From: Bispira polyomma
Lineage: Eukaryota
Length of the DNA: 64,000 nt
Assembly: GCA_965649765.1 (NCBI GenBank)
Contig: OZ287748.1
Location: forward strand, 44,082,001-44,146,000
Direction of reading: 5' to 3'
Shown here: positions 710 to 55,479 of the stretch, in pieces
Layout of the letters: each line of letters starts with the position of its first letter
Numbering within the stretch: the stretch's first letter is position 1
Translations under genes and position numbers: made by a program
Notes under the pieces: model-generated
What the model saw: the letters and a program-made list of their open reading frames with translations, nothing else
The model's database searches: none
What the model was told of the DNA's origin: nothing

Positions 710-1046
710 ATAATAATCATGACAAACCTGTTGTTCCCTCTAAAATGATGAATGTTGAAAGAAATCATAAAATGGAAGACATTGTTGATCCAGAAGTTAC
801 CCATCTTAACTATGTTGAATCATATGCAAAGACAAAAATGGAGATAAATAACAAGGGCAAGCCTTCAGTAAAATTAAACCAGAAAAGCAAAGTGCCAATA
901 TGAGGAAAAATGAAGAAGAATATGATTATGCTGAGATGAGAGTAAGGCAGGACGCAGTAAAGGTGTCTACTGAAGATCAAAAAGACAAAATGGACTCAGA
1001 TATTGACAATGTTGAAAAGATGAAGTCTTAGATTCTGAATATGCTT
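710..1046 (+). pseudogene. Unit 0: decayed fragment of a unit-B-like cytoplasmic-tail exon
   Basis: Encodes DKPVVPSK..HLNYVESYAK..KPSVKLNQ and, after frameshifts, EEYDYAEMRVRQ..STEDQKDK. Colinear with 25207-25555. The 1160-1262 stretch also resembles the B 3' flank at 26690-26805. Confidence 0.9.
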
Positions 1047-1455
1047 TTCAGTTTTCAGTTATTTCAGTATTCTGTAAACATTAAAGCTAATCAATCGTTT
1101 GAATGTGTGAAAAATATTATGTTACATATTTAGCGATGACAAAAATATTACTTATCATTATTAGTACTTTTTCAAGTCAAACTATTTAATGAAACAGCCA
1201 ATACCAATTTTTTAGAAAATTTGAATTAAGGCATATGCTTATCAAATGCATTTCATTTTTTTCTACAGTGACTTCACAGCAATTAATTAAGTTTCAATGG
1301 AAATTGTATGATTTGAGGACTACAATAGTTCAATTGAGAGTAATGTTTTTTGGATTAACCATTTTGAAAAGGCAGTTTTTCAGTTCTGGGGTGGTATTTT
1401 GACACTGAACCCCAATGATTACTTGGCGTGGCCATTTTGACACCAACAAGAATTA

Positions 1456-1740
1456 GCCTATGCTTCCTTTCAGCATATTTTTCTCGACCGACGTCAACAT
1501 ATTTCCCTCAGATCAGATCAGGCATGGGCCGACATCTGTTGCCTTAAAATATTTAATCAGTCAGAGAGCAAAAAAATCGAGAGGTCTGTCTCATTTACGA
1601 ATAAATATTAAGGAAAAAAAATTATTTTATTTTACATAGAAAATATTGGATGAAAGGAAGCACAACATCAGCCCACGTCGGATCGGATCGGACACATACA
1701 AATCGGCCGACATTGGGATGTGCTGAAAGGAAGCCTAAGC
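1456..1740. mobile_element. PIF/Harbinger-type MITE (copy 1)
   Basis: TIR gcct(a)(t/g)gcttcctttcagca...tgctgaaaggaagcctaagc with TTA on both sides (1453-1455, 1741-1743). Second copy at 59364-59714. Confidence 0.85.
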
Positions 1741-2480: not shown

Positions 2481-2547
2481 ATGAAAAGTATGGATACTGA
2501 TTTATTGACTGCTATTGGTTTATCGGTTTTCTTTCTTCTCTTACCTG
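2481..2547 (+). CDS. Signal-peptide (leader) exon for units A/B: (MKS)MDTDLLTAIGLSVFFLLLP-G, phase-1 donor
   Basis: ATG at 2481 or 2490, hydrophobic run, donor G|gtgagtactttta identical to the unit C leader donor. Phase matches the lectin exons at 8786 and 19448. Confidence 0.8.
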
Positions 2548-7060: not shown

Positions 7061-8019
7061 ACCAACTTATATTTGGTCGTTGTGTGATGACCATATGTAT
7101 TTGTGCAGTTTGGCAGAACCATATATATTAAAACTACTGACTTACAGCAAGTTCATGGTAAACTTTTCCACATGAAGGTAGTGCTCTCATGACTTGGTGT
7201 AACAGAGGCTTTAGTCGGGTCCGATACCATCCAGTCAACTCGACTTGAACTGGAATCATATTTCTAATTAACAAGCTGCATTGGTATCAGAAACGAACAT
7301 TTTGATTGTTGTACACATTAAATTCACATGAAAGTAGCAATAAAGATATATAAACAATATATTACCTTGTCATTATTAACCTTTGTTGTTAAAACAGGCA
7401 GCCATTACACATTTTCTATTGAAGGATCTGATACGGTAAGTATGATGTCATAATTTAAAGGCATAATCTGATTCGCTGACTGTACTAAACATGGAGCATG
7501 AGGTAAATAAAGGTTGATTCCAAGGAAGTTGTTCCTTAATTAAGTAAATATAATGGATTTGGTATTGTGTTTTGGTTTGAAATTGTCAAATTGTTAGTTT
7601 TGAATCGATTGTCAGTAATATTTTGAACTCGAGTTGTAAAATGGTTATGCACCCATAATATTAATATACAGGAAGTTTAAAATAATAATGTGGCACAGAA
7701 AATCAGTGAGGAAGCAAGGGGAATGTTTTGAATTAACCATAGATCTATATTTCTGTGATGGTTTTGGTTTATTATTTTTAACTTTCTAACAGGTAAATTT
7801 TATGAGAAAGAAATTTATTCTATATGAGGTAATGAATTCAATTAGAATGTCATTTACTTCTGAGGGGCTGAAGTTATTAATCACTATTATGATAAAGACA
7901 TAGATAAAAAATTTTGATTTATCAATGATTATGTTACGTATATTAATAGGAGTCTCCAGTCTTGATTGTGTTCTCCAGTAATACATTGATTTATGTAATT
8001 ATTTGAATGACAAATGGGG

Positions 8020-8785: not shown

Positions 8786-9073
8786 GTAACCTAATTAGCA
8801 GTCTTGAGTGGTGTTATCTAGATGATTATGTCAATTTACTTTGTTCTTCTTTATCAATAGAAGTGACATGGGCATTATTTGGCTACACAGACAGTCTTAT
8901 TGAGAGTGAGCTCACTGTGAGGAGTGCACAGAATGTGTTACCTTTGCTACAGACTAAGTGTGATGGGTATTTAGCTTGTAGCATGAAATGGGAGGCTGTA
9001 AACTGTACCATGGTCTCCTGTGATGGTGAGGAATATTCTGTCAACTACATGAACTTTACTTACAAGTGTCGAG
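8786..9073 (+). CDS. Unit A SUEL/Gal_Lectin-like exon (288 nt, phase 1-1)
   Basis: tttag|...CGA G|gtaat. Open frame GNLISSLEWC..IEVTWALFGY..CDGYLAC..NYMNFTYKCR, about 65% aa identical to unit B by hand count. Confidence 0.85.
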
Positions 9074-10415
9074 GTAATATTTTAACATGTGAAATGACAG
9101 AATGTATTTAAAACACAACCTATATGATCTAACCTAAATATAGTGAGTGATAGTGAGGTACTGTTGAAATATTTGTCATATTCAAAATAAGCCCTACTTA
9201 ACCATCTATCATTTTTAAATGATTAATGTACTGCATATAAACAGAGTAACATTTTAATATTTTTTATCATTTAAACACATAAACTTCTGTCAACTATTGC
9301 ATGTTGGTCTTTAAGAGATTTCATGTGTTGTTGTTTTTTCGTTCTACAAATATTCTAAAAGGTTTTTACCAGTTGCATTATATGGAACATGTCGAATTAT
9401 ATTCTATCACCTTATATCATTACCATGAGATGTTACCTACAGTCATTTGTATGCCATTTTGAATAGACACTTGCGACAATATTATAGTCAGCTATTTCAA
9501 TACAAATTACAAATATTATTTCGAATTTATATTTGATTATTTCAGGGACTTCATTATCGACAAGGGGCATTGAAACAAGCGATGGCTGGATTACACCACA
9601 GACAACAGACACCCCTTTAATCACAATCTATGTGATTAAGAATTATTTACATCAAGCAGTGTTTAAACAGTCTTCTACAAAAGCCTTATGTATTACTAAA
9701 TAGCAGCTATGTTTGTATGACTGACTCTCACTAAAGAAAATGTCAAATATTGAAACTCAGTAATACTGCAGCTGTAAGGTATGGATCAGTAATTAATTAT
9801 CTTTAACATTGCATAGCTTCGATTGTTTTGTAATAGAAAAAAACATACATTATACAATAACAACCATGCGATAAAATTGATTAATATTTGAATTATTATT
9901 AAGTATGCCCCTTATACTAATAACCATATGATAAAACTCATCTATACTTGACGTATTATTAATCAACATTTCTGTTTACTTCAGGTCAACAACAGATCCC
10001 AATGACCAGACTGACCTCAGGAACCCCACTAGTACATTGTTATCAACTAGCCTGACAGAGGAGATGGGAAATCTATAACTCCTTCAACATATTCTTCAAA
10101 AACTACTTCCCATGATGTGGTGGAATCGTCATAACAAAACAGCCATGGCTTTAATACAGCTTTAGCTAGTGATGGCTCTCTGTACAGAATGAAATGTCAA
10201 TTTTGTTTTGGTGAAAACGTTGTAAATCATGTTTTAAACTGTCAAAATTACATTGCCAGTACAGCCCATTATTTATATTATTGTACGAGTCAGTATAATT
10301 GCATATGTTGTTACATGACATGGTAACACTGTTCCACTGATCAAATGAAAAACATAAATGAGATTACCTGAATCAGATATTAACTATTAACTTACATATG
10401 GAATATTTATTTCAG

Positions 10416-10503
10416 ATTATACCGCTGTCGCTGGTTTGGGGACTGTGTGTTTTGCTTTGGTTATTACAATAGTTTTGCTATCTGGATTAATCACCTACAA
10501 AAG
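10416..10503 (+). CDS. Unit A transmembrane exon (YTAVAGLGTVCFALVITIVLLSGLITYKR), phase 1-2
   Basis: ttcag| acceptor, hydrophobic run, ends TAC AAA AG|gt as in the unit C TM exon. Confidence 0.8.
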
Positions 10504-11330: not shown

Positions 11331-13199
11331 TGTGATTGCAGTTACATTTACTGATTCTCATAAAGCTGCAACTTTCTCATTTGATATGTCAGTAATATAT
11401 GTCGCTCCTGCTACTATCACATTCTGCTATTATTATGGGTAATTCCCATGGGAGTAGCTGCCTCGACTACTGCAATTACCCTTTGTTTGGGTAAATCCCT
11501 CATTAAAAGTCGTAGTTCATTCAAAAGTATACATGTAGGGTAATTTTTCGCCTGGCTATTCACACAAATGTTACTCCATACCACAGCAAATTGCATTGGA
11601 CAAACAGAAAATGTATTGATTATTTGTTGGAGTTACACAAGAACTACTTGTGATACTTAAACCTCTCTGACAAATACATAAAGAAAGGTTAATAGAGAAG
11701 TTATATACGAACTACTTGTAAATCAAACATCCAGTCATGCTACCTGGGTGACACTTGAACCTATGTGAGAAATACACAGAGGAAGGTAAATAGTACAGAG
11801 TAAACATATGTAGATCTTTTGACATGCAAGAGTACCACATCTCCATACTCTCATTCGGTGTATGGGAATTTTCATGCAAACATCTTATGTAATAGCGAGG
11901 ATTTAACTTGGTAAAAGAGATATGTGTGGATTCTAATTATGGCAAAATGCCTTTGTTTTATTATTTGTATTTTCTTAATGGGTAAGTATTGAGTAAAAAT
12001 TTGAATACACCACAGATGTAAAATTAGAACTATTAGAAATATTCTTTATCCTTTGTGGATTGTACACAGTTCAATATACATATGTCATGTTGTCCTTCAA
12101 ACTTGTACCTGTAAATTTCCAACAAATTATGACAATTACTTGACACAAAGAAATTTGTACTCTCTGTCAGTATTTAATGTTTAAAAACATTATATTTGGA
12201 CAATATTGTTTGTTCTAGTACTTTATCTAATGAAGCGCCCCAACAGGGTGTCCAGACACTGTCTTTTATCTAGTTCAAAGGTATATTATATCCAAAATGT
12301 AGTCTTAGATAAGCCCTTTTATAATTATGTCCATTGGGCCAAGACTAAAACGAAGGACTTTGTTTTCGCTTAAGATATCATTATAAAAGGCTTGGAGCTT
12401 AAATTAAGTGGCTTTTTAAACATAAAGGTTTATCCAAGTGTTTATAATTGATACTATTTATTTACTTTTTTTAGTGTAACACAATTTAAATTCCAACATG
12501 GGGACATTGCTTTCTACCACGTTTTTTGTAACACTGTAGCATGTAGTGTGCAATGATATTAATACATTTGATAACAAGACACTGAAGCCTCGCATAAGGA
12601 TATTGCTCTGTACCAGGGTTTGGTTTAGTTTCTTAGGAACAATTAGCGCTTGCAAAAAGAGGGGATTCCCCTAGATAAATATATAGTCCCCAAATATTGG
12701 GAAGTAAATTCTAAAGTTTAAAAGGTCATATCTTGGAAAAGTTGATTTTTCCAAATCGTGATGGATTTTATTGTGATGTTGAAGACAACAGTAAAACATT
12801 TCAATTGAGTATTTATTTTTTACATGTTAGCATATGTTTGTTTGACAATTGACATTAACATACTATAAAATTGCTGAAAATTTTTAAGATGAATAAAATT
12901 TGAATGCCCCAAGCCAAACTAAAAATCGGAAGGGATGGCAGAAGCAAAAGTAGGAGACAGCCTGGGAAGTTTTTTGCAGGTAAAACTACACTGCTGATGA
13001 CATCCAAAGGCCATGTGACATAATTTTTTGGATAGATACATTGTTATTGAATGCAAAAGTGGCTTCCGACCTTCTTTGGGAGCTATGTGAACTGTATTGT
13101 CCAATACGTGTAAGAATTTTTTAAAAGGCTGCTCTGACATGAGAGTCCACTATTGTATAATGTGGCTTACTTATAGTTGCAAAAAGAGGGTCCCCACTC

Positions 13200-16100
13200 C
13201 CCAATGGTCTGGATTGTAACAGTGCACTTAAAGCAGTGACTGGGTGTACTATTGTTAGTTCACCATTGAAAATGTCATGGAAAGGGGTAGCATATACTTC
13301 ATTATTCCAAAAGCCCCTACATCCTGTAGGACATGCATCTAGATGCAGCTCGTTCGTGAATGGTATGATGACGTGTTAAATATATGTTATACCATTGAAT
13401 TTTTGGAGAAATTTTTTATACCATTGAAGGTCAGCTTTCATTTCTAGGGTGACCTTAAATCTTTTATTAGCCCCATTTCCTCTGGGAGCTGCTAAAAGTC
13501 TATTAATAAAAATACACTCTAGTGCTACACACTTATGAATATAAAGAAGTTGCCCTAAAAGGTATTGAAATTTTGTTTTAGAAATGTAGGTTTTATCATA
13601 AACCTCAACACATGTATTATATACTTCTGCCAGTTTCTCAGGTTGAATGCTCATATTGTCTTTTATGATATCGAAATCTATCCACAAGCATGTTAGTCGT
13701 GGGTGGGATAAGTTTGTCAGCATTCATCGGTAAACCGAGATTTGTCATTTAATCATGCAGTTTTTCAAAACCTGCCTGGGCGCGTTCGCTTAACGCAACG
13801 CAAACGTAATCGTCAATATATCCGAATACTCTGAAGCCCTGCTTTTCCATGTGTGATGTTATTGTGTCCATGCAACGCTGGAAAGCAGCACTGCCGTGTA
13901 CCCAGCCAAACGCAATTGCTAGATCTAGATAGTATTTATCATTCCAACATATACCTGGCTTTACAGCATTCACTGGATCAACTCTCAAGTTTCTGAATTT
14001 ATTCTTACATTGTCTTTTAGTAACGCCCCATATGGGTGGGACAAGTTCAGTATTACTCGACGCTTCGTGATATTCTTAGGCCTGGTTAATAATGGTGAGC
14101 AATTATACTGTAAATCCTTAACTTCTTCTACTGGCCCTAACATGGCCTCTAGTGATTTTTCTTTTTTCTGAATGACAGGGTGTGGATGTTGAAGTGCTGA
14201 GAAATTATTTTTCATATTGTTATTTCTGATGCCCTCTGGGCTTTCATGCCACAAAGAGAACCCAAATTTGATGTACTGCAAAAGCAGTTGATCTGGATAA
14301 TGTTTAAGTAATTTTTCCTATGCTTCTACGTGCAGGCCAGAACTGATTGGTCTTCTAGCCTGTCTGTAGTTAGCTAGGCCTGATAATGTCAGCTAATCTC
14401 TAAATTTCTCTAATTGACTCAATATGTGTTGCCTGTCTGTCAGGGCTCAGAAAGTAAAGTTTGTGGGTGAAAGTGCTATAAACCATGTGGTTTTATCAGG
14501 ATCATTGCAGTCAGTGACATTCCTGTTTACAGGCTCACTAACAGTGGAATTCATTAATTCCTTAAATTTTTTCTTTAGAGCACGGATTTGTGAATAAATT
14601 ACAAGGCGTATGTTTCCTGGAGTGGTCTCATTAGTCCAGTTTCTAGTTATGAAAAAAATAGCATTACTGGCTTGTAGCTTGTCTTCTACTGATATCAATC
14701 TATTAATACTAATTTGGTCTATATCACATGCAAATGTAACTTCAAGTAAATATATTTTTTGAAGGAATCCGTCAGGAACAAATTCAATAGGCATGTAACA
14801 GTGAAAACCAGCAGTTTCATCCCAGTCTTGGCAGAAGAAGTTTGAAATATGCACTATTGGAAGTGTTTTACCCCCCAATTTTGTACAAAGTTCCAATTTG
14901 TCATTTCAATTTTTACTTTTCAACTTTTACCGCTGTCATTTACACTGTCATTCATACATGTCAGATCATAAGCGCTATCAGATCTGTTATACTGAACCTT
15001 ACCGTCCTTGACTGCACTGAAAGTCCCCTTGTCAGGTGTATTATGCTGTGCATGCATACTCTCGACTGCTGGTCTAAATTTTTTATCTGAAACAGCTTTG
15101 ACATTAATAACATTAGATAACTCTTTATCCACATTGCTTACATTACAATACTTGTTTAAATTCTCCTGAATTACAGGTTTTGTCATCATTTCATCAGTTA
15201 CATTTTCTACATATTCATTTACTTGTGAGTTTTTATACTTATTGTCATATAGTTGATGCTGTTCAGTGCCAGCAGTTATGCTTATAGTTGACATGGTCGG
15301 TCTTATAAGAGCACTTTCCGTTGTTAAATAGTTTACATATTACCTTTGCCTCGTTCGAGCTCGCCCTTTGGCTGGGATTTGAATTTTAACTATGGCTGTT
15401 ATTTGCCAGTGCATGTTCAATCTGTTTAGGGCGCACCAGGTATTTTTCTGCTAAGACAGTGGACCCTCTTGGACCTCTTGCATATTAAGGACCAAGCCTG
15501 TCCTGACGACTGGCCATGGAAGCGAGGCTGCATCCAATAATGCATATACAAGTTGGTGCATCATACTGTGCATGAGAACGTTGTCTTGAACCTGGAGAGT
15601 GTTCGATATCTGTCCAGCAGTCCATTGCGGTAGAGTCAGCTGTCAGGCATTTCCCACAGATCCCCCTATCCATCCCTCATAGGGCCAACGAAACCGAGCA
15701 TCCACAGTTGTGACATCTGTGCTGTTAAAACGGCCCGATTTAGTTCTGGGATTCACCTTACCTTGTAAAAGGTGTCTGTGTGCCAATGTTTCATACTCTG
15801 CTAACTGGCGAGAAATGGCGGACTGGACACTGAGCATCGTCCTTAAGGCATCTAAACTGGGAACAATGCCGTCTCTCTGATATTCAAGTGAGTTCATGCT
15901 CTGTGGCTGGATCGGTGCGGTGAGAGAGGAACCTAACATCAGAACTGGTGTGGGTGGGACGTGAGTTCCCCCAAGTCCAAGCTGGCTTGGTAGCTGCGAG
16001 GTCTGAACCCCATTTAACCTGTGTAGTGAAGAAATTGGAGATTGTGACTGCATCGGTACTGTGTGAGCAATGCCTAAGGCATACTAAGATAGCAGAGAAT

Positions 16101-16930
16101 GTTGTAGTTCCTTAAGTATGGGTATGTGTGAAGACGTCAAAGAGGGCACGTTTGTGGCCGCCTGTGCTTCCACTCTTTTGATCCGTTGTGACAATGAGAT
16201 ATTGGACGATTTCAATCTTCTTAGTATAGATAACATCTTGTCAGAGCCCGAGTGAGAGGTCGTTGGTTGACCGAGTGTAGATGGAAACAGTGTATTGGGC
16301 CTAACCTCCTGTCGGAGAAAGGAGTCGTTTCCAGGAGCCATACTAGCAACCTTACTAAGCAAGGTGTGATCAATAGAATTTGATACCTGTTGAACCATGT
16401 CCTCTGTTAGTGTTAATACCTTGGCTCGTCTTGTCACTGGTTTCTTTGCCTTTGTTATACTGTGAAGTGGTGTTTTCGTTGTTTTCCCCATTTTAATATG
16501 TGTATAGTGTACTACACGTCATATAGCTAAAACCAATGTAAACTTATAAACTAAAATTCAGTATTTAACAATTCACTTCTTCTCATTTTAAATCCCAAAT
16601 TTAATATGGTGTCCCTTGTTCTAGCAGGAAGAAGGGGGCCATTCTAGCAATTCTTTTGGCTCGTCTAGAGATGGACAGAACGTGAGAATAATGTATGTGC
16701 TAACAAAATTTATTGTTAAGGTAGAGAAAACTAATGGGGTTGTGGACTGATATAGCAGGTGTCCTAAAGGTGTCCTGCTTACCAAAGACTTCAGGATGGT
16801 TGTTTGTCTGCAAGGTTTTTTAACCTGCCACTAAGAATCATACACACAGACGCAATACATTCAAGCGAGAACTATGTACATGCCCATATGTATAGAACCC
16901 CAGGATGGCATTGCACCCTGGCCGCCTGCA
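13200..16930 (-). mobile_element. Ngaro/DIRS-type retrotransposon copy 1 (gag, RT, RNase H; recombinase not seen)
   Basis: Gag MGKTTKT (16491) and SGRFNSTD..RWP; RT with SPLLTRPK..RRVILNL, AFGWVHGSAAFQR and GYIDDY; RNase H with ADLQWY..FNG and LHLDAC. Frameshifted. Ends approximate. Confidence 0.88.
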
Positions 16931-16944
16931 TTCCTGAATCTCTG

Positions 16945-18833
16945 ATAAGTACCCATGAGCAAAATTCTCAATCAGGAAATATCTTCATCAGCCTTAAGGT
17001 TTAAACACACACAGCCGCATCCGGATTTTTTGGCAGAATGGGATTTAAATCCCATATGGAATTTATCTTTTTTGTAGCTACACTAAGACGAATGATTCGG
17101 CCGGATCATGCATAATGAAGATGTTTTTCTTGGTCTAAATTTACCGCTAAAATAATGTAAACATACATATCATCGATGATAACACATCAGTTTGCAGCAG
17201 ATTTAACATCTACTCATTTACCTTTTTCAAGGTATGTGCATTTTTTATTTATGTTAAAACATAGAACTGATAAAAAACACTTGAACATGCATACTGTGTG
17301 TAAATAAATACTCTTAAAAAAGTATGTAGTGGTCGTTGTGACAACACGTGTTTCCTAATTTATGGTACATACTAAATGGCATTTTGTGGGTTGTTCCTAA
17401 ATTCAATGTTCAATTATTGTGTTCAAGTACTTAAGATAAATTAGGAATTGTTTGATATTTTTAAAGAGTTTATGGTTTATAGTTATATAATTATTTATTT
17501 CTCAAAGTCAATATGGTATTTACATATAAATAATATTTGATAATAAGGAAAATATAAATTATTAGATTGATGTCTTTTCTAAAAGTAAAACGCCCTAATT
17601 AATATCTCAATAGCTTTATAATAATAAGAATAATGATAATTTATAACCATAATAAAAAAAGGATAGTGAAATGTACAATGTAAAATTTTTGCAAAAAAAA
17701 AAGACTTTAAACATTATTGTCATTTGACCATTAAAACCATTCAAATATTTTATCTTATATACAGTTGTATAACCTGATGCAATGCTATGTTTAATTGTAC
17801 AGATTTATCCTCTCATTATATTAAGACACAAATCATAGACAACATACATGACACTACTACAAAAATATACGTTAAACAACTGTCACTGCTTTTATTTCAC
17901 CGGCTATTTATCAGAGTGGCTGTAAACAGTAAATGTTGTCAGGCACCAACGAGTCCTAAAAATGTAAACAACCTGATATCTCCAATTTGGTGGCAATTTT
18001 ATGCCAGATAACATCATTTATTTTCCTGTCTCTGTATTTCTTACAGGTCTTGTCGTACAGTGATGAACTCCTGACTTCTTGAATTAAAAGTTCTATTTTA
18101 ACATCTGGAAGAGATATCAATCCATATCTTTTAGCCATTTTGCAACTCAAAAAAATACAGGTATTTTTGGAAATCCGCTGAATATATCCATCCGTCTTGG
18201 ATTTAGAAAAAAAATCCATGTAAAAAAAGTCTGGGTGGGATCTATAGATCCACATACGGATTTGGCCCAGTGTGTCCCCCTACAGTATCCATGATGTACA
18301 ACTGGATCAGCGATCCGGATCCGCATCCAGATTTGGCTGTGTGTGTTTAGACCTTTAGTGAGAAGGAAGGAAAATTCCCCAAGTTAGATTTTCAAGGATA
18401 ATTGTTAGCATAGTTTAGTGTGTTTTTTTAATTCACTAATATTTGGATTTAATAGCCATATATCTAAAGCCTATATTTTTAATTTGGGACACAGCTATAT
18501 TATTAATTCTATATTTCGGAAAAAAAATTCTGCAGCTCTGTATTGGATTGAATACCAGAGAAAAATCACTCAGAATTCTTCCAAAGTGTGTGTCAAACCA
18601 TAAGATTTTATTAATGACAACAAGAATAGACTACAATACACAAGGTGAACTATAATTTTGTTCTACGTTTTCATGTTAATACTGAATTTTAATTCTGCTA
18701 ATGTATATTCATTGTCTTCATTCTGTAAAAAACAAAATCAATGGGACTTTTCTTCTCCCCCCCCCCCCTTACTTAGGCTGATGGGGAATTTTCGTGATGG
18801 GAACTTTTCCTGACGGGTACTTCTTCGTATACC
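16945..18833. mobile_element. Non-autonomous TIR element whose left arm is split by the Harbinger insertion
   Basis: 16945-16996 joined to 18358-18380 is an imperfect inverted copy of 18741-18822 (aagtaccc..catcagcct..aaa(a/g)t(t)ccc). Confidence 0.6.
16997..18354 (-). mobile_element. Non-autonomous Harbinger derivative carrying a MADF (Myb/SANT-like) exon
   Basis: 20-bp TIR aggt(t/c)taaacacacacagcc, TTA TSD (16994-16996, 18355-18357). ORF 17956-18255 has LIQEVR..LYDK..YRD..WHKIA..L. Confidence 0.9.
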
Positions 18834-19447: not shown

Positions 19448-19735
19448 GTAACCTAATTGGCAGTCTTGAGTGGTGTGATCCAGATGTTGATATCCATATC
19501 GCATGTACTTCTTCATTAATAGAAGTGACACAGGCATTCTTTGGCTACACAGACAGTTGTGGTGAGAGTGAGTTCACTGTAAGGTGTACACAGAATGTGT
19601 TACCTGTTCTACAGACTAACTGTGATGGGTATTCATCTTGTAAAGTCAAGTGGAAGGCTGTAAGCTGTAACATGGTCACCTGTTATGATGAGGAATATGC
19701 GGTCAACTATATGAACTTCACTTACAGGTGTCAAG
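19448..19735 (+). CDS. Unit B SUEL/Gal_Lectin-like exon
   Basis: C..I.I.C...IEV.QAFFG...C...C.QNV..VL...CDG..SC.V...C...NYM.F.Y.C follows SUEL cysteine spacing; ttttag| and G|gtaac. Confidence 0.88.
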
Positions 19736-32779: not shown

Positions 32780-33980
32780 TGTATGCGTAGATGGTACTAG
32801 CAGGCACTGGCTATATGACTACTGTATGAGTTGTCTTAGTTGAAGACAACACCAAGGTTCTTTACCTTACTTGATGGTGACATATTACTGTCAAGGAGAT
32901 TGATCGGGAAGAATGGTTTGAAACTGTCTTGAGTAGCATTGCAGACACTTTCCATCCATTTTTGCACAGCCTAAAGGCATTTGCAAACTCTGATATGCTT
33001 GAGTCAAGGTTTGTTGCATCTAGTTCTAAATATGTTTCTCTGTCGTCAGCATACAGGTGATGAGTAAAGTTAAACTGAGAGATTATTTTTCTGAGGGGAG
33101 TGGTGTACACAGTGAAGAGGAGAGGGTCTAATACAAAACCTTGTGGGACACCATGGGGGAGTAAGAAAGCTTCTAAATTTTTCATCAATTATGATTTTGT
33201 TTTTACTTTTTATTATGTAAATAGGACCAGATCCAACTGGACGGTGCCATCAAGGCCAAACCAATCAGTCACACAATTAAAGAAGATAATATGGTCAATA
33301 GTATTAAAGGCAGCAGACAGGTCAAACAGTGTGAGTGCTACTTCTCTGCCATTGTCAACAGAAGCAAAAATATCATTTTGAAAAACTTTCAACAGGGCGA
33401 TTTCAGTTGACTGGTGGCATCTGTATGCTGAATGATGTGTATTTAAGGTCCCTTTATGGGCCATGAGGTCATTTAACTGCTTTGCCACTGTTTCTCAATA
33501 AATTTAGAGACATACCTAAAATTGAACACAAGTCTATAATTGTTCAGGATATTTGTCAAGGCTGGATTTTTTAAGAAGTGGAGAAACATATGCAGTTTTA
33601 AAACAAGATGGAAAAATGCCTTCCAAGAGCAAGAAATTTGCAATACTGCTAATGGGTGTGATAAGGATGTCAGTATATCCCTTTACCAAAGATGTTGGGA
33701 TTGGATCCAGATCGCAGGACTTATTTGGGAGGATCAAATAGTCTTAAGGATTTCTTCTTCGGACATAGTCCGGAAGTAGGTTAAAGTGTAGCATATGGTT
33801 GTTAAAGATTTACTCTAAGAAAAATTTACCAAAACTATTCGCCAAGTCTGCCACTAATTTGCAGTCAGGTAATATAACCATTGAAGCCTTGTGGAGTATT
33901 TTTTATATCTTTGGGTTATCACGGTTTTCACTGACAAGCTTAGTGTAATGGCTATGTTTGCTGAGTTCCATATCAGTTCC
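32780..33980 (-). mobile_element. CR1/L2 LINE, RT half
   Basis: [42 protein letters not shown] and HLYADD. Confidence 0.9.
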
Positions 33981-33989: not shown

Positions 33990-36900
33990 GTGGAAGTGAA
34001 AAAGGAAGGAGAAAGAAAAAGCTTCTAATTTGCGTTTCATTTTCTGTACATGTTAGTGGGTATATACAGGTTAAAGTATATTAAAATATTGTAAAATGAT
34101 ATTTTAAAATGAGCCCAAACCCAACCAAAAAGAGGATGGTACTATAGTGGAGAAAGTAGAAGGGACTACAGCACCAGCTTAAGATGTGGATTGCAAATAA
34201 GTCAACACAGCGGAACTAGGCCAAAGGACATGTGACATAATGTTTTAAAGTATTTGAAAGCTGCTGTAGCGCCCGATCTGCAAAAAATATGGAAACCATG
34301 GAATGAGGGATCAATTCCAAGGTGCTGGAGAATTTGTCTAAGTGCAGACCGGACGTGTGAATCCACTATTGGATGGTGTGGTAAAGTGGCACAAGTGAAA
34401 AGTGGGGCAGAAGGTGAAGAGTGTCTAGAAGTAATAAGCGTAGATAGGGCATTCACAGGACACATGTGAGGAACTGTTGGAAGTTGAATAACATGTGATG
34501 TAATTGAGGTCTTGAGGTTTTTGGCCCATTTAGTGATGATGTCAGCACCTGGAGGACCAAAGATTACATCTTGTTATAACAAATGCCTGGTTGGGTCCAA
34601 TCTGGACCTCGAGTGAGGTGCAATGTTGGACATTCTTAGGAAGCCATAGAACGCTAACAAGAAAATGGACCTATATAATATTGGGTCTGGTAAGATTTGA
34701 CATGCTAGTGATATCATAGAAATGTGTTTGATAGTAAAGACCCCTTTTGGTATGGGCCTAAATTCAGAGTTGTGTTTCATACTCCTGATGAAAAATGAGA
34801 TGGCATTGTGATGAAATATATCAGGCAGTATGTTATATTTCTGTGTCATGAACTTTAATGCTGCCAGATACTTCTTTACTACTTTTGGTAACAAATTGCT
34901 CTGTACCAAATATTCCATAAATGCCAAAATGGAATGAACAGATATTTCTTGAATTTTACATAATGATGGAAAGCAAGGAATGTCTTGAACTGTTAAGTAT
35001 AGGCCGAGGTTGTTGAAGGCCTGAGTTCTGACTGTAACCCTTGGATGGCAGCGTTCCCCAGAGAAGAAGATGTCACTGTGGAACCTGCAATTATATATGA
35101 GAATCCAAGTTATGGTACTGAATAGGAACACATCTGCGTATGTATTTGTTAAGAGAACGAAATATGTCCTGGTTGGGCGGATGCTCTGAGTATATGCGTG
35201 ATAACGCGTCAGCCTGTACATTGGCCTCACCCTTAATTTGTTGAATTTTTATAGTTATGTCGTGTGTGGCGCTAATCAGGCAAATATTTTCCGGTCTTGA
35301 TGACCAATACAACTGCCTTATTGTCACAAATAATGGTAACTTGGTGGTGTTCCCAATCCTTACCCCATACCCTTAGTGCAATGACTACATAAAGCATTTC
35401 GAGTAATGGCTAATCTCTGACCATAAATATCCAAAACTGAAGTAAAGTAGACCTCTTGTCCCCGTATGGCACCTATACCTGTGAGTCAAGCATCTAAGTG
35501 AAATTCCTCATTTGCCCTTATATTCTGTGGGTTGTAGTATGTAATGCCGTTATAAGTGGGTAAGAACTGGATGAACCAGTCTAGGTCTTTCTTTTCTATT
35601 GTCTGTAACTGATGAACCAGTCTAGGTCTTTCTTTTCTATTGTCTGTTCTGAATCTGCTTACAATTATCTACTTTCACTGCATGAGAAACGTTGTTATTA
35701 TCTCCATCTGATTTACACAGTTCTATATTTACGTCTATTATGTCTCTACTGCTGCTACATTGACTACTTTTAAATTGTTCACAAATGTCTACTTCAATTA
35801 TATGAGAAATGTTGTTATTATCTCTATTTACATTACATATTTCTATATCTATGTCTCCTATGTCTCTGTTACCATTAAGTTGACTGTCAGTTGCACATGG
35901 TGGACAACCTCCATCCTGGCTGCCAGGTTTGGCGTTGGCACTGTTGGCTTTCAAACATTTAAATTCGGGGTGGTTATTTTCTTTATTCAACACTTTATAA
36001 CAATATGAACAGTGGTGCTTATACTGACTGTGGTCACTCTCGTGACTGCATGAACCATTGTTGAAATACTTGCATATGATCTTGCCTTTGTGTTGGTTTT
36101 GAGGAGTATGTGTGAAGTGGCCATTCACAAGTGCCATCTGCAACATACTTAGGCGATTCAACGCCCATTGCATTTGGTTAGACCAGTCCAGCCTACCTTC
36201 TTCAACCTCTTACATGTTGTGTCCCCATGCTGCGCAGACTGTTGGCCAAGGAAGTACGTGTGAATCTCGCAACGTGTAAATCATCTGGTTCAACATACCT
36301 TTCATCGCAGTGATGTCAGTTGTCTGCACTGCATTGGCAAGCTGGCCGGCAGCCCACTAAGATAACGACAACTCATCAAATTGAGTTTTCTTACGCGCTG
36401 TGCCTCCAATCCAGACTTTGTTGGGCCACCTACATTGGGGTTCTGCCTTGCAAATATCTGTGGTGTTGTATCTACCTGACTTTAGCCTAGAGTGTAGCTT
36501 ACCTTGTGCAAGGTCCTTATGATAACGCGTATCATATGCTGCAAGTTGCAGGTTGGCGGCTGCATTCATGTCTGGCAAGTTTGCAGTACATCCACACGTA
36601 GGACGATTCCAACTCGCTGGTACTCTTGGCCGGCTGCAATTCCCGGACATTGGTGTAAGATTGGCTAAGCCGTCGGGCTGAGCAGTCAGGCTGAGCCGTC
36701 AGGTCGCCCACCTTGGTGTGTATGTTCTGACGATGCAGATCGACAATGGACTTGTTCAGTAGGATACTTGGTGACGCTAGAGGTGTAGAATTGCCTCTGG
36801 CTTCTACCCAGTCAAGCCGTCGGTTCATCTCTAGATTAGCTGTCTCCAAACGCTAGAGAATGGCAAACATGGCACTGTCCAGATTGTTACTGGGATTTGT

Positions 36901-38810: not shown

Positions 38811-40502
38811 CACTTGTTTAAAGAAATAAAATAAAATTAAAGTTAAAATTTCATGTTAAAAATATTAAACATCTAACAATTAAAGTGTGTAGACATATAT
38901 AACTGAGAGACTCAATATAATAGAAAAATAAATAATGCTATTTCTTGGTTAAAACCAAATCATCACCATATCATTATCAAACCCAAAGCATTTTAAAATT
39001 TGTCTAGTAAACGTAAGGATTAACCAGTGTGTATAATAAGGAGTATATTTTGTATGGCTAGTGTCACTATTTTCTGTATGTGAGGCCTTAATGTTTATTA
39101 ATGCAGTGAGGAGCAATATTTACCATATTTAGAGAAAAATATTTAATGATAATCCTGTGCTAAAATATAGTTTACTTCACCTTTTCTACAGGAAAGACTT
39201 TGTGTATTAAATAATAAACAACTATTGAATACAAGTTATTATGTTTTATCAGGATTTTGCTACGTGATACTTTTTATTATTATTTTTTCACTTTCCTTTC
39301 TTAATAATTTTTTTAATATCAGACAGGCTAGAACAGCAGTAGATGTATATTAACCGACTATAAACAGACTAGGCCAACAGTAAACAGCAAAATATATATG
39401 TATACCGAAACACCAAATTTATGTGTGAATGTATCATAATTTTCATCTCATTTTAAAATTATTTTATATTGTGGTTGCATTATTTTCAGCACCTGCTTCA
39501 GCATTAGGACTAGAACATACTAAATTCTGAGTACTCCCAATCTGTGGCCTTGACGACCCAAAACACTGGCAAAATGGCTGCCAGTAAAGAGATTTGCTTG
39601 CCGTTTTATTATGACAGAGATTTTTATCAAATAGTGTCAACATAAATCTCCCTAATAATTTAATTAAATACAGCCGGTTGGACTTTTTCTTCATATTTAC
39701 TACATTTATGCATTATAAATACTAACACCATGTGGATATAGAGAAATTCACGCCTCGTGTGTGTACAAACCCTCGAACGCTCACCATTGGTAATCACGAG
39801 CTCACCAGTCGTAATTACCGTATTCATGAGGCTGCTCGAATGTACCATTATTATGAATGTGTCTCAGGTAAGTTTTACTTTAAACACCTTTATTCCAAAA
39901 TAATACCATTAAAACCATGGAATTAAAACACATGAAGGCTTTTTTCAAAATAAATTAAAATTAACTAACCAAATTAATAATCTAAATTAACTAGCAGTTG
40001 CTTTTTCTTGTATTGGGTTTAAGTTCCTTCTAGGATTTAAACAATATTTCAATATTACTAAACATGAATGAAATAGTCAGCTTAGAGAATGTAACTAAAT
40101 TACCTAGCGTTGTTTTGTTTTTACTCTGGGTTCTAGTACATTTTAATTGTTTACAAAGTTTCAGTTTTACAAACTTTTATGAGTAGTAAGAACTGGTATT
40201 AATTTTCAGAACCTCATAAAAAGTATATTTTAGGTACATTTACCTATGTTTAGAATAGTTTGTTTTAAAATCATGTATTATTGCTCAGTATCTCAGATGA
40301 AGGCCATAGAATGTTTAAGCTTTAAGTTTTTATACTTTTTTAATAATGCTAGTGTTTTTTTGTTGTACTGTGTAAGAGGAAAGTTTCATTAGTTATGAAT
40401 TTTAGCTACTGTGTGTAGATAGTGAAACTTAATTCCTAGTGGTTTATTTATTTGTATTTATCTTCTGACTAAATATTGTCCAACAGTAAGAATCAATTCC
40501 AG

Positions 40503-40565
40503 TCAATTTCAATTTCCTCATAAACTTCACATCACCATGGTCTTTGCTTCTGCTTGTTTTAGCTG
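40503..40565 (+). other. Leader-like exon upstream of unit D (..SPWSLLLLVLA-G|gtgagt) with no in-frame ATG
   Basis: Hydrophobic run ending in a phase-1 G|gtgagt like the other leaders; the frame is closed by TAA just upstream. Confidence 0.45.
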
Positions 40566-41686
40566 GTGAGTTTAACACAAATCCAGCCCCTAAAACCTCA
40601 ACAAACAAACTCTGCTGCTTGAATATAGAATCAATTCTCAACAAGCATGTATACACATCTCTAAATTGGTTACAACAAAAATTACATGTAAAATTACATG
40701 TCAGTGGCTAGGTCAGAAGGTATAATATGTCATCTTTTATTAATGAAAAGGAAGGGTAATGTAAGCTTTACCCAAAACTATCGAATGGTCCACCTGATAA
40801 TGCAGATGTTGTTATATCCTTCAGAAACAGACTTTAAAGTAAACCCGTTGATGTGTTTTTTCAGATAGTGGGCATTAGACTTTATTTGTACAAAGGTTAA
40901 TTGTCACAGTGTATTTAAAGTATTAGTTATCACCTTAAGATGTTTTACTCATGTTATATCATAGTTACAAATTTGTAATATCATTTTTGTTAATATATTA
41001 AATAACAATATGCAATGCAAACAAATCATTCACAGAAGTGTTTGTGAGTATTTGTCCAATGTATTGGCTCACTGGTTCTGTTGTTGCGCTTTAGAAGATG
41101 CCTAGTATCAATAAAGTGCGTTAAAATTCATATTAATAAAAAAATAAGTAATAGTACAGTAGTGTACATCAGATGTTAGACATTTTCATTGTTATATTTT
41201 CTTTTATTGGATTAGATGATGTTTTATCAGGTGATAATATTACAATCACTGATTGCACTGACAGGATCTTCCAGGTCACTAACCATTCGTTTACCAGTTC
41301 ACAAACAAAGTTAAGCATGTAAGTTATGAATTTTATTGTTTCAAAAATTGTGCTTATAGTTATGCATGAAAAAAAAATCATTTTAAAAACTACATTGCTA
41401 TGATAAATAACTTTTCTCTTAAATAATAACAATATTAAGTTTATTTACAAGTGAATGTGTGAAATGACCAAAATTACTTTTTATGTATCATACATTCATA
41501 GATATTAATCAACAACTCACACTATTTTGCATGTGTAATCTCTCAAAACTGGAAAAAATGAAGAAAAATTGGACAAAAGTAATTTATCGAACCACTTGTG
41601 TAATTAGTTGTAGACTTTACACAGAAATAAAGTTGAAAAAATATGGCTTTATATAGAAGTTGACACTATTGAATCGGGCAGGCCTT

Positions 41687-41870: not shown

Positions 41871-41996
41871 TAAAGGTGATGGAAATTATATATATATATA
41901 CATTCTTGTCCTGTGTCATTGCAAACACTTTCATTGTGCAGTTTTAATAAAATATATTATGGTTTCATGGTTCTTTTTAATGGAATGTATCTACAG

Positions 41997-42090
41997 GTTC
42001 AATCATATCCGCAGTAGCTGGTGGAGGAGGCGGTCTCATTATTATTGTTATAATTATTATCACCATATGTTGTTGCATACGATATACCAG
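41997..42090 (+). CDS. Unit D transmembrane exon (GSIISAVAGGGGGLIIIVIIIITICCCIRYT), phase 1-2
   Basis: ctacag| and AG|gtaata; homologous to the unit B TM exon. Confidence 0.88.
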
Positions 42091-42512: not shown

Positions 42513-43533
42513 ATCAAAAGAGACTACTGTGCCCAACTCATGAAATGACAGTGTACATCTTGAAAATGGAATTTAAATGAACAACATTTCTAATAACAGC
42601 AAGTCTGATACAAATTCTTCCCGTCAAGATGACCCTAACACAGTGAAGACAAACATGTATGCCTCTGTGACTAAAGCTATTAGTCACAAAAAAACAAGTG
42701 TCAAGATTATGCCACCTGAAGACGATGAAGCAAATTATGTTTACAGTGATAAACCAGCAATTCCTAAAAAAATGCCAGACTTAGTGTGTGATACTTCTTG
42801 TGACTCATCAAGAAAAGGAAACATTGACCCCAAAAAGAAAGAAGATCAGAATGCATATGAAGATGTGGTGAAAAATCAGAATGATGATGATGCATTGATG
42901 CCCAGTGTAGCCAACACTCAGAATGATACACCAGTGATGCCAATTGCAAACAACAGTGAGTATGATGCACCTCTAATGCTAGGCTTGACAAATGGTCAGT
43001 ATGATGCACCAATAATGAACAATCAATACGATGCACCACTAGTACCGGATGAAAGTACACCATCAGAAGATTCCTATGTGATCCGTATACAAGCTACAGA
43101 CTATGCAGAATCATATGCAAAAACCAGTGGAGATGACATCACTTCCAAGCCATCGATACATATTAAGCAACATGTTTCCAGTGATGTAGTGCCCAATAGT
43201 TTTGAATATGACTATGCTGACATGATAGACAAAGAGAGGTCAATAATAGATAAAGATTCTGTTGTAACAAAAGAAATTTTATATGAGAAGGATAAGAGTG
43301 CTGGAGCATCAGATGATTATTCTGATGTAGAAATACAGGAAGAAAATCCCAAAGAAGATTCAGCTATGGAAACGAGACTAACAGAGTATGTTCTGGCAGT
43401 AGAAAAGCCTGTACATCTGGACAGAGGAGAAAATGGTGTTGCACAATCATTAGCCAAAGACAAGCAAGAAATAGATACTAAGACACTTCAGGTTTTAACC
43501 ATTATGGTTGAAAATGAAATATACAATACTTAA
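42513..43533 (+). CDS. Unit D cytoplasmic-tail exon (16 Tyr); two stops at its 5' end, possible alternative start at 42600
   Basis: ORF 42577-43533 shares YASV, DKPAIPKK, DYAESYAK, EYDYADM and MVENEIY with B. From the ttacag|42513 acceptor the frame hits TGA 42541 and TAA 42574. Confidence 0.75.
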
Positions 43534-50893: not shown

Positions 50894-50948
50894 ATGGATA
50901 GACAGTGCCTGTGTCTTATTTGTTGCCTATCATTTGGTATTGTACTTG
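50894..50948 (+). CDS. Unit C leader exon (MDRQCLCLICCLSFGIVL)
   Basis: ATG, hydrophobic run, G|gtgagt. Confidence 0.88.
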
Positions 50949-53900
50949 GTGAGTACTTTTAGAAAATAATATATAAGCTAATTACCAAATTACTAGGATT
51001 AAAGTTTGCAATAGAAAAACTGAAAATGATATTTAAATTAATAAAATGTAACCCATATAAGCACTTGTGTCTGTCAAATATCATATGAATTGGTCGTATA
51101 ACTCCTTAAAAAACTTTTTCACACCACACTATATTTTTATTAATATTTAGCCACAGATTCGAAAGAGGAGGCAAGTTTGAAGTCTTGTAGAAAAGATGAA
51201 ACAATTGATCCAAAGCTACCCTGTGGGGTGTTGTGGGTTGTTCAAGTAACAACTGCAATGCTGGGTTATAATGAAGGTTGTAATAGATCAATGAGAATCT
51301 ACTCATACCAAAAAGATGTCTTATCATTATTCCAAAGAACTTGTGATGGATATTGTATATGTACAATTCCATGGTCTTCGATAGAATGTCTAATTGACTC
51401 TTCCACAGATGATGCAGTGAACAGTCTCCTTATAGTTTTCAACTGTATAAAAAGTAAGTTTTACTTGAGATTACTTGGTTACGAAATAATGAAACTGATT
51501 AGTAATTCTGTAAATTATTAGTGCTAGTCCATGTGGTTTTATGCTGGCAATGTAGAACTTGCTAATTGACATCAGATGTCTTTGATAACAAGTAAATAGG
51601 CTTTGAAAAGTAATTTTATTCACACTACTGTTTACAAACAATGTCTTCTATATAAAAAATTGAACTGTCTGACATTTGACTTTAGATCTTAATTATCAAG
51701 TCAACATGTCATTGAACAAATCAAACCCCTCCATCCTTTACTTGTGTTCAATCCCGTTTCTAATAGCCTCACAAAGCACTTTTAATCTGTAATTCTCCAA
51801 CCTAAGGTTACACATCGAATACTGTTTAGGGATGATGGACAAATGGAACAAATGTTCAGTGCTATGTTGAATTTAGTAATACTAATGACTCGTTTGTTTA
51901 TCATATAATTTTTCCTCCATACAAAATAAAATAGAAAAAATTTCCATGAGGTTTTAGATATATTTGTATTGTTAAATTTTATTTTATTTTGATGTAGCTA
52001 ATCAGAAACGTCATGATATTATAGTAAATAACTGCAGTGACTGGGTCTTCTCAAACACAACACAATCGCCTATCACTTTACCAGCAGCATTAAGCACGTA
52101 AGTTGCGACTTTATTAGTTGATTTTAAAATTCTCTTCATCATATATTAATACGAAAAATTATTATAAAATACTACATTGATATGATAATAATTTTTCGCT
52201 TACATAAAAATTTCATCAATATTTAGTTAAATTAATATGTGAATGTGTGGATTGGCTAAATCTAGTTTTATGTGTTAGTCTCATATAAAACAATGTAAAA
52301 ACTAATTTTGTTTTAACTCTTGAAACTGTGATTCAACAATAATGCACATGTGGTTGTTAAAAATAGTTGTTCATGATATTGTATAGAATTATAATGGATA
52401 ATTTAATCATCCTCAGCTAGCAATGTGGACAAAAGCCTCTAACTTGGTCACTTTGGTATGCTTTCGTTATTATGTCCCCGGCCCGAATTTAGTAATAATA
52501 ATATAATAATGGTTCGAGGGTATCATGCTTTTGCGTTGTCCATCCGGTGGTCTGTATTCACCTATTTTTCTTCAAGTTAGGAATATGCTAGCTTTCCAAA
52601 ACTTCACCAAGCCTTAAATCAAACCATAGACTAGACAAGGTCCGAATATCTAGGAAAAAAATAGGAAATTTCAACCTTTCAAATTTAGCCTTATTCTCCG
52701 GATGGACACTGGTTGAGGAAAAACTTACCTATTTTTTTCAGATTGGGAATGTGCTAGCTTTCCAAAACTTTACAAAGCATTAACCAGACCATAGACTAGA
52801 CGAAGTTCGAATATCTAGACAAAAAAAATGCAATTTCAAAATTTGCTGGGAGTTTGACTTTTTGACTTGGGCTCTGGATTGACACTGGATGGAGGACAAA
52901 CTCACCTTTTTTTTCAGATTGGGAATATGCCAGCTTTCCGAAACTTTACAAAGCATTAACCAGACCATAGACCAGACAAAATTCCAATATCTAGAATAAA
53001 AATATGAAATTTAAAATTTGCTGGGACTTTGAAATTTGGACTGAGTTAGGAATATGCTAGCTTTCTGAAACTTCACCAAGCATTAAACCACACCATAGAC
53101 TAGACGCAGTTCAGATATCCAGAAAAAAATAAAAAATTTCAAAATTTGCTGTGACCTACCTCAGGCTTTGGATATACACATGATACACAAACCCACCTAT
53201 TGTTTTTAGGTTACGATTAGGATAGCTGAAACTTTACCACGCTTTCAACCACATCACAATCTAAACAAAGTATGAATATCAGGGAAAAATAGTTTTAACA
53301 TTTATTGGGATTTCGAACTTAGTCTTGGGATGGACACACCGTGGAGTAGTGTGGCCAAAACTGACCTATATTTTTCACATGTAAGATTATGCTGGCTTGC
53401 TGAACCTTTAAGCATTTAAACCCACGTTACACTCAACAAAGTTCATATATCAGGAAAAAAAGCTCATAATTTGCTGTGACTTTGAACTTGGTCCCTTGAT
53501 GCACAGTATGGCCCATGCTCGCCTATATCTGTTTAACTTAGGAATATTTTTCTTTTATTAAAGCATTCAAATACACCTTACATAAAAAAAATTTAATATC
53601 GGGGGAAAATGTTAACTTTGAATTCCAGATGGACACAGGATCGAGGAATGTGATAACCACTCGTACAAATTTAGTTACAAAGAATATTGTGTTTATTAAT
53701 GGTTCAATAGAATTGATTATTATCAGATCCATACTTATAGTAATAATATATTACAATATACAATATCTTTAAATGTTTGTTTCAACTAATTTTACTGAGG
53801 ATTGTGTCATTAGTATTACCTATCCCTGGGGCCATTATTTGTCGGGAGACATATTTCTAGTTTTATCATACATTTTCTCTCAATTACAGATTCACTTCAA

Positions 53901-55479
53901 GTGTAGTAACTGCAATTGATGTTGATACATCGCCTTTCAGTAAAGATGAGAGTTTAAACCAAACAAATTCTAAACTCTCAACTGCTGAAACATCAACATT
54001 TGTGCATACACTTGATGCCAGCCCGGACCAATCAACATCTAACACTATTTCTCGTGTACAAACTTCAAAAACTGGGATGAATGAAGAAAAAACTGATAAA
54101 GGTATTACTTTTGCAATTAGTTGTAAACTTTTATACAGAAGTAAACTTAATAACTTTGAATAATTTGTACGAAACTATGACATATATATTTTGTTTATCT
54201 AGCCTTATCTATCTGCTTATCTAAACGTTATCCACAAAAAGATTAGCATTCAGCCAAGGGGAAGGGGGATCTGTAACAAAGACTTGATTTTAAAAGATAA
54301 GACTTAAGATGTTTCTAATTGTGTTAATGCTCTTTGTGCAAGTGGAATGTAGATTATTCCAGACAAAAAGAGCCATATATGATGCTAATTTGTCGACATG
54401 GCTACCGTATAAATACTTAAAAATTGACACTATACCGTGGATCAAGTTACAAAGCATTCTTCTTAAACTGTGAATATGACCAAATATATACACTAACACT
54501 TCAGAAGTGCATATCTCAATTTTTTTTTAAATATTTGAATTTTTCAAAATGTTGCAGAAACGGTTCTACATGTTCTTTATATATGAAAATTATAGTACCA
54601 AATATCAATAGGGAAGCATTTAGCATATTTTAAATGATGTGTGCTTCAACCACACTTTGCTTTCTGCATTATCACTAATGTCTTATCATTTGTGACGTTT
54701 ATTATAGTATGTGTGACAGTTTGGTGACATTTTTGTATTTTTCGTAAATTAAATAGCGTAAATGCATTTAATCAGATATAATGACATACAATGTGACAAA
54801 ATACTCAATGACTATGTGTTTTTCTGAAAGAGTTATTACTATGTTGTTGTTTTATGCAATATTGTTTAGGTGTTATAGCTGGTGTTGTATGTTGTGTGAT
54901 ATTGTTGATGATATGTTTTGCAACCGGAGCAGTCTGCTGGTACAAAAGGTATGCTGCTTACAACTCATAAAAAAATATCTGATTCCTTCGATATCTGACT
55001 TTTAAGTTTTTAGAACATTATTTCAGAAAATAATTCATTTAATTTAATAGAAAATTGGGAAATTTTAGATTTTCTTGTATTTTCTTCATAGACAATCAAG
55101 AATATTTTATTCTTTCAGGCGTCACAAAAAGAATAGCTCACAAGAAAATACATATGAAAACCCCTCTGCTCCAGGCATAGAGGTGACTCGTCTTGATACA
55201 GTTAAACATACAAGTGAAATTTCAGATATAACATCAACATACATTGACAGACCAAATGAGACTGCAGAATCTAAGATGGGCAGAGCCTATGAGGATGTTA
55301 TGATACATCATGGCGAGCAAGTAGAAATCAGAACCAGTGTGAATGTTTCAGAATATAATGCTGCAGAATCAGATGTAAAGGACATTGAAGGTCACTATGC
55401 TCCTCTTACAACATATGAAAATATACCTAGAAATACACATCACATCCTGACCAGTGAATATGAGATGTTGAAAAAATAG
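50894..55479 (+). CDS. Unit C: complete 6-exon, 369-aa SUEL-like lectin receptor with ITIM/ITSM-like tail
   Basis: Exons 50894-50948, 51151-51453, 51998-52097, 53890-54101, 54870-54948 and 55119-55479, all GT-AG, total 1110 nt, one open frame. Confidence 0.92.
51151..51453 (+). CDS. Unit C SUEL-like exon
   Basis: VQVTTAMLGY..C..DVL..FQRTCDGY.IC..W..AVNSL..FNC aligns with A and B; A|gtaagt donor. Confidence 0.9.
51998..52097 (+). CDS. Unit C linker exon (..NNCSDW..)
   Basis: gatgtag| and AC|gtaagt, phase 1-2. Confidence 0.85.
52469..53860 (+). mobile_element. HINE/Helentron-like element with a ~170-bp satellite-like array, in unit C intron 3
   Basis: Subterminal inverted repeat tatgtccccg / cgggagacata, 3' ctagtttt; unit starts near 52559, 52726, 52903, 53194, 53364. 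Confidence 0.75.
53890..54101 (+). CDS. Unit C Ser/Thr-rich stalk exon
   Basis: ttacag| and G|gtatt; 70 open codons, phase 2-1. Confidence 0.85.
54870..54948 (+). CDS. Unit C transmembrane exon (GVIAGVVCCVILLMICFATGAVCWYKR)
   Basis: tttag| and AG|gtatg. Confidence 0.9.
55119..55479 (+). CDS. Unit C tail exon (7 Tyr: YENP, YEDV, YAPL, TTYENI, SEYEML)
   Basis: tctttcag| in frame with ORF 55075-55479. Confidence 0.92.

Follow-up and report, generated by a model that had tools for sequence, protein, structure and literature searches.

The question raised by the 64,000 nucleotides examined here is what kind of receptor is encoded by a row of same-strand exon groups built from a lectin-like head, a stalk, a membrane segment and a tyrosine-rich tail. 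The stretch, referred to below as the window, comprises positions 44082001-44146000 of contig C1 (OZ287748.1) in the 1.035-Gb assembly of the animal Bispira polyomma, and is gap-free with a GC content of 30-44%. A previous sequence-only reading took the genes for Siglec-like glycan or pattern receptors. On balance we think it probable that they are instead non-catalytic tyrosine-phosphorylated recognition receptors with a protein-type ligand, phosphorylated by Src-family kinases and recruiting tandem-SH2 proteins through a short tail, or PTB, SH2 and SH3 proteins through a long one.

Exons were located by comparing the window with itself and by translated searches; searches and structure models were run exon by exon, and spliced models were joined in a script solely for frame checks. 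Three lectin-like exons (beginning at 8786, 19448 and 51151), four membrane exons and four tail pieces were found, all on the plus strand, and are arranged in five pieces: a tail fragment at 709-1048, followed by units A, B, D and C. The five paralogous units described earlier are real as pieces, but within the window only B and C are intact, and the intron phases (1,1,2,1,2) previously given for all five can be demonstrated for these two only. Gene C is open for 369 amino acids, exactly the length first proposed, and consists of a signal-peptide exon (50894-50948; 78% identical paralogues occur in genes C' and E, outside the window), a SUEL-fold exon (51151-51453), an extension exon with a Cys-x-x-Trp motif (51998-52097), a stalk exon (53890-54101), a transmembrane exon of a type common to the upstream array (54870-54948) and a short tail exon (55119-55479). 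Gene B, open for 573 amino acids, consists of a phase-1 signal-peptide exon (11939-11981), a SUEL-fold exon with nine cysteines (19448-19735), an extension exon with the conserved Cys-x-x-Trp (22086-22179), a stalk exon rich in Ser, Thr and Pro (22393-22574), a transmembrane exon 62% identical to its counterpart in a second species (24198-24288), and a long cytoplasmic tail exon with 18 tyrosines, two PVVPPK motifs and a terminal ENDIY (24806-25829). Splice sites are canonical in both genes, bar the GC donor of the B transmembrane exon. The 578 residues first assigned to B came from a signal exon at 2490-2547, which was rejected as it sits upstream of unit A. The choice fell on the exon at 11939-11981, since a paralogue of this exon stands before B', the duplicate of B. 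Genomic contigs from three runs reproduce the exons of gene B without differences and carry B' as a separate copy, and the cluster is therefore no assembly artefact.

The identity of the heads was settled by structure and not by sequence profile. PF02140, the profile that the sequence-only reading proposed as a check, gave sub-gathering matches to B (the best, E 7e-6, 26.7-27 bits) and A (E 4.7e-4), none reaching the gathering score of 31.4 bits, and no match to the head of C or to that of L023, the related gene of the second species. AlphaFold (AF2) models of the B and C head exons, with a predicted local distance difference test (pLDDT) of 80, matched the lectin domains of CSL3, SUL-I and latrophilin with Z 9.0-9.7 for B and 8.4-9.1 for C, while the next unrelated fold stood at Z 6 or less; as predicted structures, both heads are confirmed to adopt the SUEL, or rhamnose-binding lectin (RBL), fold first claimed for them. 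The fold is under-called here by Pfam, and similar receptors have probably been overlooked in annotations; the role of the SUEL domain in lophotrochozoans has been called elusive (PMC8878817).

Adopting the fold is not the same as binding rhamnose. The defining motifs of RBLs are YGR and DPCxGTxKYL, and the sugar in CSL3 is contacted by Glu7, Tyr27, Asn74, Asp79, Gly83 and Lys86 (PMC3269628). Equivalents of these contacts are kept in no aligned member of the family: FGY, LGY, LKY or LGH stands where YGR is expected, DPC is absent, and Asn or Ser occupies the position of Lys86. Because YGR, DPC and the rhamnose-binding residues of CSL3 and latrophilin are replaced, Siglec-like glycan recognition is not supported, and in place of the sialic acid-binding V-set Ig head of a Siglec there is an RBL fold. 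The head would work like a latrophilin-type RBL module rather than a proven lectin. Family heads share an additional invariant Trp and Cys; compared with the eight cysteines and four disulfides that characterise RBLs, the B type has eight cysteines plus one, and the C type is without the Cys4/Cys7 pair. In four of the five genes (B, C', E and L023) the cysteine count is odd in the SUEL exon and becomes even once the extension exon is added, which supplies one Cys in the conserved Cys-x-x-Trp, and this suggests that an extra disulfide links the head exon to the extension exon.

Beyond the window the same design recurs. Seven related head exons lie within 110 kb (44.04-44.15 Mb), and the rest of the genome has none of that similarity. 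Gene C' is open for 378 amino acids and gene E for 641, the latter with one extra stalk exon, while A' carries a stop and B' is a lone head; four of the nine units of the SUEL cluster are intact and five are broken. In the second species, L023 repeats the exon plan from the head through extension, stalk and membrane exons to the tail, with unchanged phases, and is open for 700 amino acids, with head identity between the species of only about 35%; no signal exon was identified for it. The end of another receptor gene there (L022:861-2268), comprising a stalk, an A-like membrane exon and a 91-residue tail with YENV and YQSL, sits 8 kb upstream of a SUEL-fold exon, and the tandem arrangement is therefore common to both species. 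A profile search of 1.8 billion proteins returned three close relatives only, all unnamed single-exon calls on animal contigs, and no annotated homologue. A scan of JGI metagenomes found no relative, and word-indexed protein searches with the B tail, the head alignment and the tail alignment gave nothing beyond the L023 tail, these searches being length-limited and their blanks weakly informative. The stalk exons of E (L016:4966-5669) and C' (L015:3837-4390) are locally duplicated along with their splice sites, which accounts for the additional in-frame exon of E and for decoy acceptors within C'.

The tails belong to two classes unrelated to each other, and no Pfam family was found in them. 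The long tail (B, D, E and L023) has 340-410 amino acids, about 20% of them acidic, and conserves PxVPxK, DYxxSYAK, YDYA and a terminal (M)VENxxY, the terminal NxxY and PxVPxK being present in every intact copy. A comparison of E with L023 shows 10 of 14 tyrosines conserved, whereas the other residues are conserved at 41% (uncorrected p 0.025). We take the terminal NxxY to resemble the PTB site at RET Y1062. That RET tyrosine is a documented PTB site (PMC2150770). The short tail (C and C') has 120 amino acids and in C ends with YENI-x11-YEML, a pair of tyrosines spaced 15 residues apart with a spacer of 11 (uncorrected shuffle P 0.04); Y934 and Y949 of Draper are likewise 15 apart (10.1101/198986). 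Under the definition YxxI/L-x6-12-YxxI/L this pair is an immunoreceptor tyrosine-based activation motif (ITAM), and the same residues also fit a switch motif (ITSM) plus an inhibitory motif (ITIM), so that, as far as motifs can indicate, the short tail may equally be read either way. C' fits the ITAM consensus loosely, and the motif is absent from B and L023.

These proteins would thus be single-pass, lack an enzyme domain and carry conserved tyrosine motifs, as do non-catalytic tyrosine-phosphorylated receptors, and the architecture first proposed (a single SUEL-fold domain on a stalk rich in Ser, Thr and Pro, with tyrosine motifs in the tail) is borne out; what had been overlooked is that there are two tail classes and that both are common to an adjacent array of genes with CUB-like heads. 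The heads of C and E are 62-64% identical and their transmembrane segments and tails are unrelated, a pattern characteristic of paired-receptor ectodomains. No charged residue, the mark of an activating member of such a pair, is present in any of the transmembrane segments.

The window is the 3' end of this 717-kb same-strand array. From 43.44 to 44.14 Mb the tail exon of gene C occurs in 15 plus-strand copies, which are 61-70% identical and come with matching membrane exons, and a CUB-like exon, which recurs about 18 times, lies within 10 kb of 11 of the 13 upstream short tails (P 5e-5); the long CUB-type tail recurs five times. Directly upstream of the SUEL cluster stand two genes whose head is CUB-like (atlas 0.94, with CUB accounting for 22 of 30 matches) and whose tails show homology with the long class (20.4 and 16.3 bits, against 7.1 or less in 300 shuffles each). 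With heads and tails of the upstream CUB genes paired by coordinates, all four combinations occur along the 717 kb: CUB with short tail 12 times, CUB with long tail five, SUEL with short tail two and SUEL with long tail two. The locus is a natural case of two unrelated head domains using two signalling tails in one array, and such mixing is typical of recognition receptors that change fast. B and E have a common tail class with heads only about 30% alike. The tail of gene C is no closer to that of C' (68%) than to CUB-linked tails, and in the second species a C-related head is joined to a long tail; gene C is for these reasons most simply read as a product of exchange at the phase-1 intron, in which a SUEL head gained the short tail of the array. 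Stops interrupt several of the CUB copies, and the clusters that neighbouring CUB-like exons resemble are drawn most often from Annelida. As a locus in its own right, C1:43436044-44031487 holds about 18 single-pass receptor genes with CUB-like heads, arrayed on one strand and using the two tail classes found in the SUEL genes.

Pairwise estimates (NG86) of the ratio of nonsynonymous to synonymous substitution rates (dN/dS) are 0.57-1.97 for heads, 0.45-0.61 for tails and 0.12-0.44 for membrane exons. Tails and transmembrane exons are under purifying selection, and heads are less constrained than membrane exons; positive selection on heads is not established by these ratios.

In proposing how such genes might work, we suggest that B, C, C' and E, if expressed, would yield type I membrane receptors without an enzyme domain, each holding one SUEL-fold head, probably completed by the short extension exon via the extra disulfide, on an O-glycosylated stalk. 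The head most likely binds a protein or another non-rhamnose surface ligand. Clustering driven by that ligand would lead a Src-family kinase to phosphorylate the tail, whereupon the short tail of C would dock a tandem-SH2 protein, either a kinase of the Shark/Syk type or a phosphatase of the SHP type, and PTB, SH2 and SH3 proteins would assemble on the long tail of B and E, which would serve as an adaptor scaffold. The SUEL genes would represent the SUEL-headed end of an array whose other members are CUB-like-headed, with heads and tails exchanged at the phase-1 intron ahead of the membrane exon while copies arise and decay. This account is favoured by open models with identical phases in four paralogues and in the second species. 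Several observations weigh against it: the gene models are drawn from genomic DNA alone and most CUB genes were paired by position rather than assembled; the tyrosines of the B tail are not significantly more conserved than its other residues, and the tail motif statistics as a whole are of modest strength, at p 0.02-0.05 before any correction; the spacer of 11 is longer than the x6-9 of the ITAM definition used for Hydractinia Alr, and the first +3 position of C' is occupied by Val; and a nominal head dN/dS above 1 is confined to pairs that involve broken unit A, the value for C-C' being 0.57.

The proposed account has to be weighed against adhesion or guidance co-receptors without any immune or self-recognition role, comparable with EVA-1, a Slit co-receptor, or with the latrophilin lectin domain, which binds teneurin and the Toll-like TOL-1. 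The membrane SUEL proteins known so far are EVA-1 and latrophilin, and latrophilin lectin domains solved in complex with proteins are among the nearest structures; NxxY and YxxP motifs are also used by developmental receptors, as at RET Y1062. Yet co-receptors of this type are single-copy and conserved, whereas the genes described here lack an annotated homologue among 1.8 billion proteins, retain only about 35% head identity between species and are broken in about half of their units, and we consider a purely adhesive or guiding function unlikely, though not negligible.

A glycan or pattern receptor that binds sugar through the SUEL domain seems to us a rather poor prospect. Its fold is that of the RBLs, its stalk raises the head, inhibitory-type motifs are present in C, and certain true lectins vary in motifs and disulfides, but with the CSL3 contacts kept in no aligned member it would need a new site. 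It is very improbable that the region is mostly duplication debris in transposon-rich DNA, its open genes silent or without a specific signalling function. Five of nine broken units, head dN/dS near 1, models taken from genomic DNA and retroelement remains between units are what such debris would leave; four open paralogues and a further open gene in the second species, among which phases, cysteines and tail motifs are conserved, are not, nor is dN/dS well below 1 in transmembrane and tail exons.

The receptors have analogues, and no orthologue, among the characterised proteins considered. EVA1C (C21orf63) is also a single-pass membrane protein with a SUEL-type ectodomain, and is a structure-atlas neighbour by shape (TM-score 0.69). 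However, EVA1C carries two SUEL domains and a FAM176 domain (PF14851), whereas here each gene of a tandem, multi-copy set has one degenerate SUEL exon, a mucin-like stalk and a tail blank in Pfam. The rhamnose-binding lectins SUEL, CSL3 and SUL-I share the fold (Z 9.0-9.7) and most cysteines, but are secreted and carry YGR and DPC, while the receptor heads are membrane-bound, have these motifs and the sugar residues replaced, gain the extra invariant Cys, and form a separate clade (support 100/99) on a long branch. Latrophilin (ADGRL) likewise uses a membrane-attached RBL fold for protein binding (PDB 6ska, 6vhh, 8suf), but it is a seven-pass adhesion G-protein-coupled receptor with OLF and GAIN domains, in contrast to a single transmembrane exon followed by one tail exon. 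As the sequence-only reading had supposed, then, the genes are orthologous to neither EVA1C nor latrophilin.

In their organisation they parallel Hydractinia Alr and Botryllus FF/FcoR, whose single-pass receptors are likewise encoded in clusters, include pseudogenes, show exon shuffling and degenerate domains and carry ITAM or ITIM tails, although those have Ig-type heads and proven allorecognition and ours have SUEL or CUB heads and are known from genes alone. We offer tentatively, as an unlikely outcome, that the array serves immune or self/non-self recognition as a germline-encoded complex, a third and Ig-free paired-receptor design beside these two, in which SUEL-fold and CUB heads would be combinatorially coupled to activating-type and adaptor-type tails by recombination, possibly with tail-less head exons spliced to downstream membrane exons. 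Any immune role is our inference from sequence. Drosophila Draper (CED-1/MEGF10) resembles these tails in combining a long-spaced ITAM (tyrosines 15 apart) with a PTB motif on a non-catalytic tail, but it is a single gene with an EGF-repeat ectodomain, and here the ITAM-like and NxxY motifs belong to separate tail classes. The adaptors PAG and LIME1 have comparable acidic, unstructured, multi-tyrosine tails, with juxtamembrane cysteines as in D and E, and were the top feature match for the B tail (0.78, a lead only), but they have no folded ectodomain, and the likeness seen is one of features, not of sequence. In literature mostly outside subscription journals we found neither a stalked receptor that joins one degenerate SUEL to tails of this type nor tail sharing with CUB receptors, in keeping with the earlier view that the family is undescribed. 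In annelids and molluscs little is known of the recognition receptors that act upstream of Syk/Shark and SHP signalling, and the locus offers named candidates.

The remaining units of the window are partial or decayed, as had been stated. At 709-1048 lies a frameshifted, B-type long tail exon fragment, a pseudogene remnant with 86% nucleotide identity to 25206-25556 whose match switches frame. Unit A has a candidate phase-1 signal-peptide exon (2490-2547; 19 hydrophobic codons and a GTGAGT donor), an open SUEL-fold exon 64% identical to that of B with two cysteines lost (8786-9073), an extension exon 61% identical to that of B, without the conserved Cys and with an uncertain 3' end (9546-9631), a stalk exon of approximate 3' end with a 2-nt insertion relative to A' (9985-10190), and a transmembrane exon of a third type (10416-10503), no closer to that of gene C than to others. 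A tail exon was looked for downstream of A and of A' and none was found; a 38-nt exon-like piece at 7398-7435 was rejected as it breaks the frame of A. Unit D comprises an extension exon of C/E type (41216-41318; 68% nucleotide match to 51923-52273), a stalk remnant with a stop (41506-41577), a transmembrane exon of E type with a juxtamembrane CCC (41997-42090) and a long tail exon interrupted near its beginning by two in-frame stops (42513-43533). A later in-frame acceptor could bypass these stops, but D would still be headless, protein and DNA searches having found neither a head nor a signal exon for it; a candidate exon at 40478-40565 was unsupported and dropped.

The birth-and-death evolution amid transposon remains that was first suggested for the cluster is supported. 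Decayed DIRS-like retroelement remains, with reverse transcriptase and tyrosine-recombinase pieces, occupy 12965-16491, 34128-36849 and 57801-61213 on the minus strand, one of them within the first intron of gene B, and elements of a similar kind border the genes of the second species in L022 and L023. Reverse transcriptase fragments of long interspersed nuclear element (LINE) type lie at 32801-33731 and 61760-62907, also on the minus strand, and an almost whole LINE is present inside the 15-kb intron of C'. The first intron of B also holds a MADF-domain fragment (PF10545, E 2e-4; 17956-18255, minus strand), probably of a Harbinger-type transposon. Intronic tandem repeats of about 176-181 bp are found in gene C (52558-53489) and gene B (22890-23249). 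About 40 kb past gene E a cytochrome P450 exon (L020:6504-7064, minus strand; PF00067, E 2e-53) is a possible synteny marker, and erythrocruorin linker exons were detected above cut-off in the same genome; like the Annelida-type CUB exons, they agree with an annelid source but are no proof of one. Genome-wide there are at least 150 PF02140 matches, many in tandem rows of single exons 4-10 kb apart; those at C4:88.22-88.34, 99.26-99.43, 13.89-14.00 and 36.86-36.95 Mb, C2:98.68-98.91 Mb and C8:45.68-45.80 Mb may be further SUEL receptor arrays.

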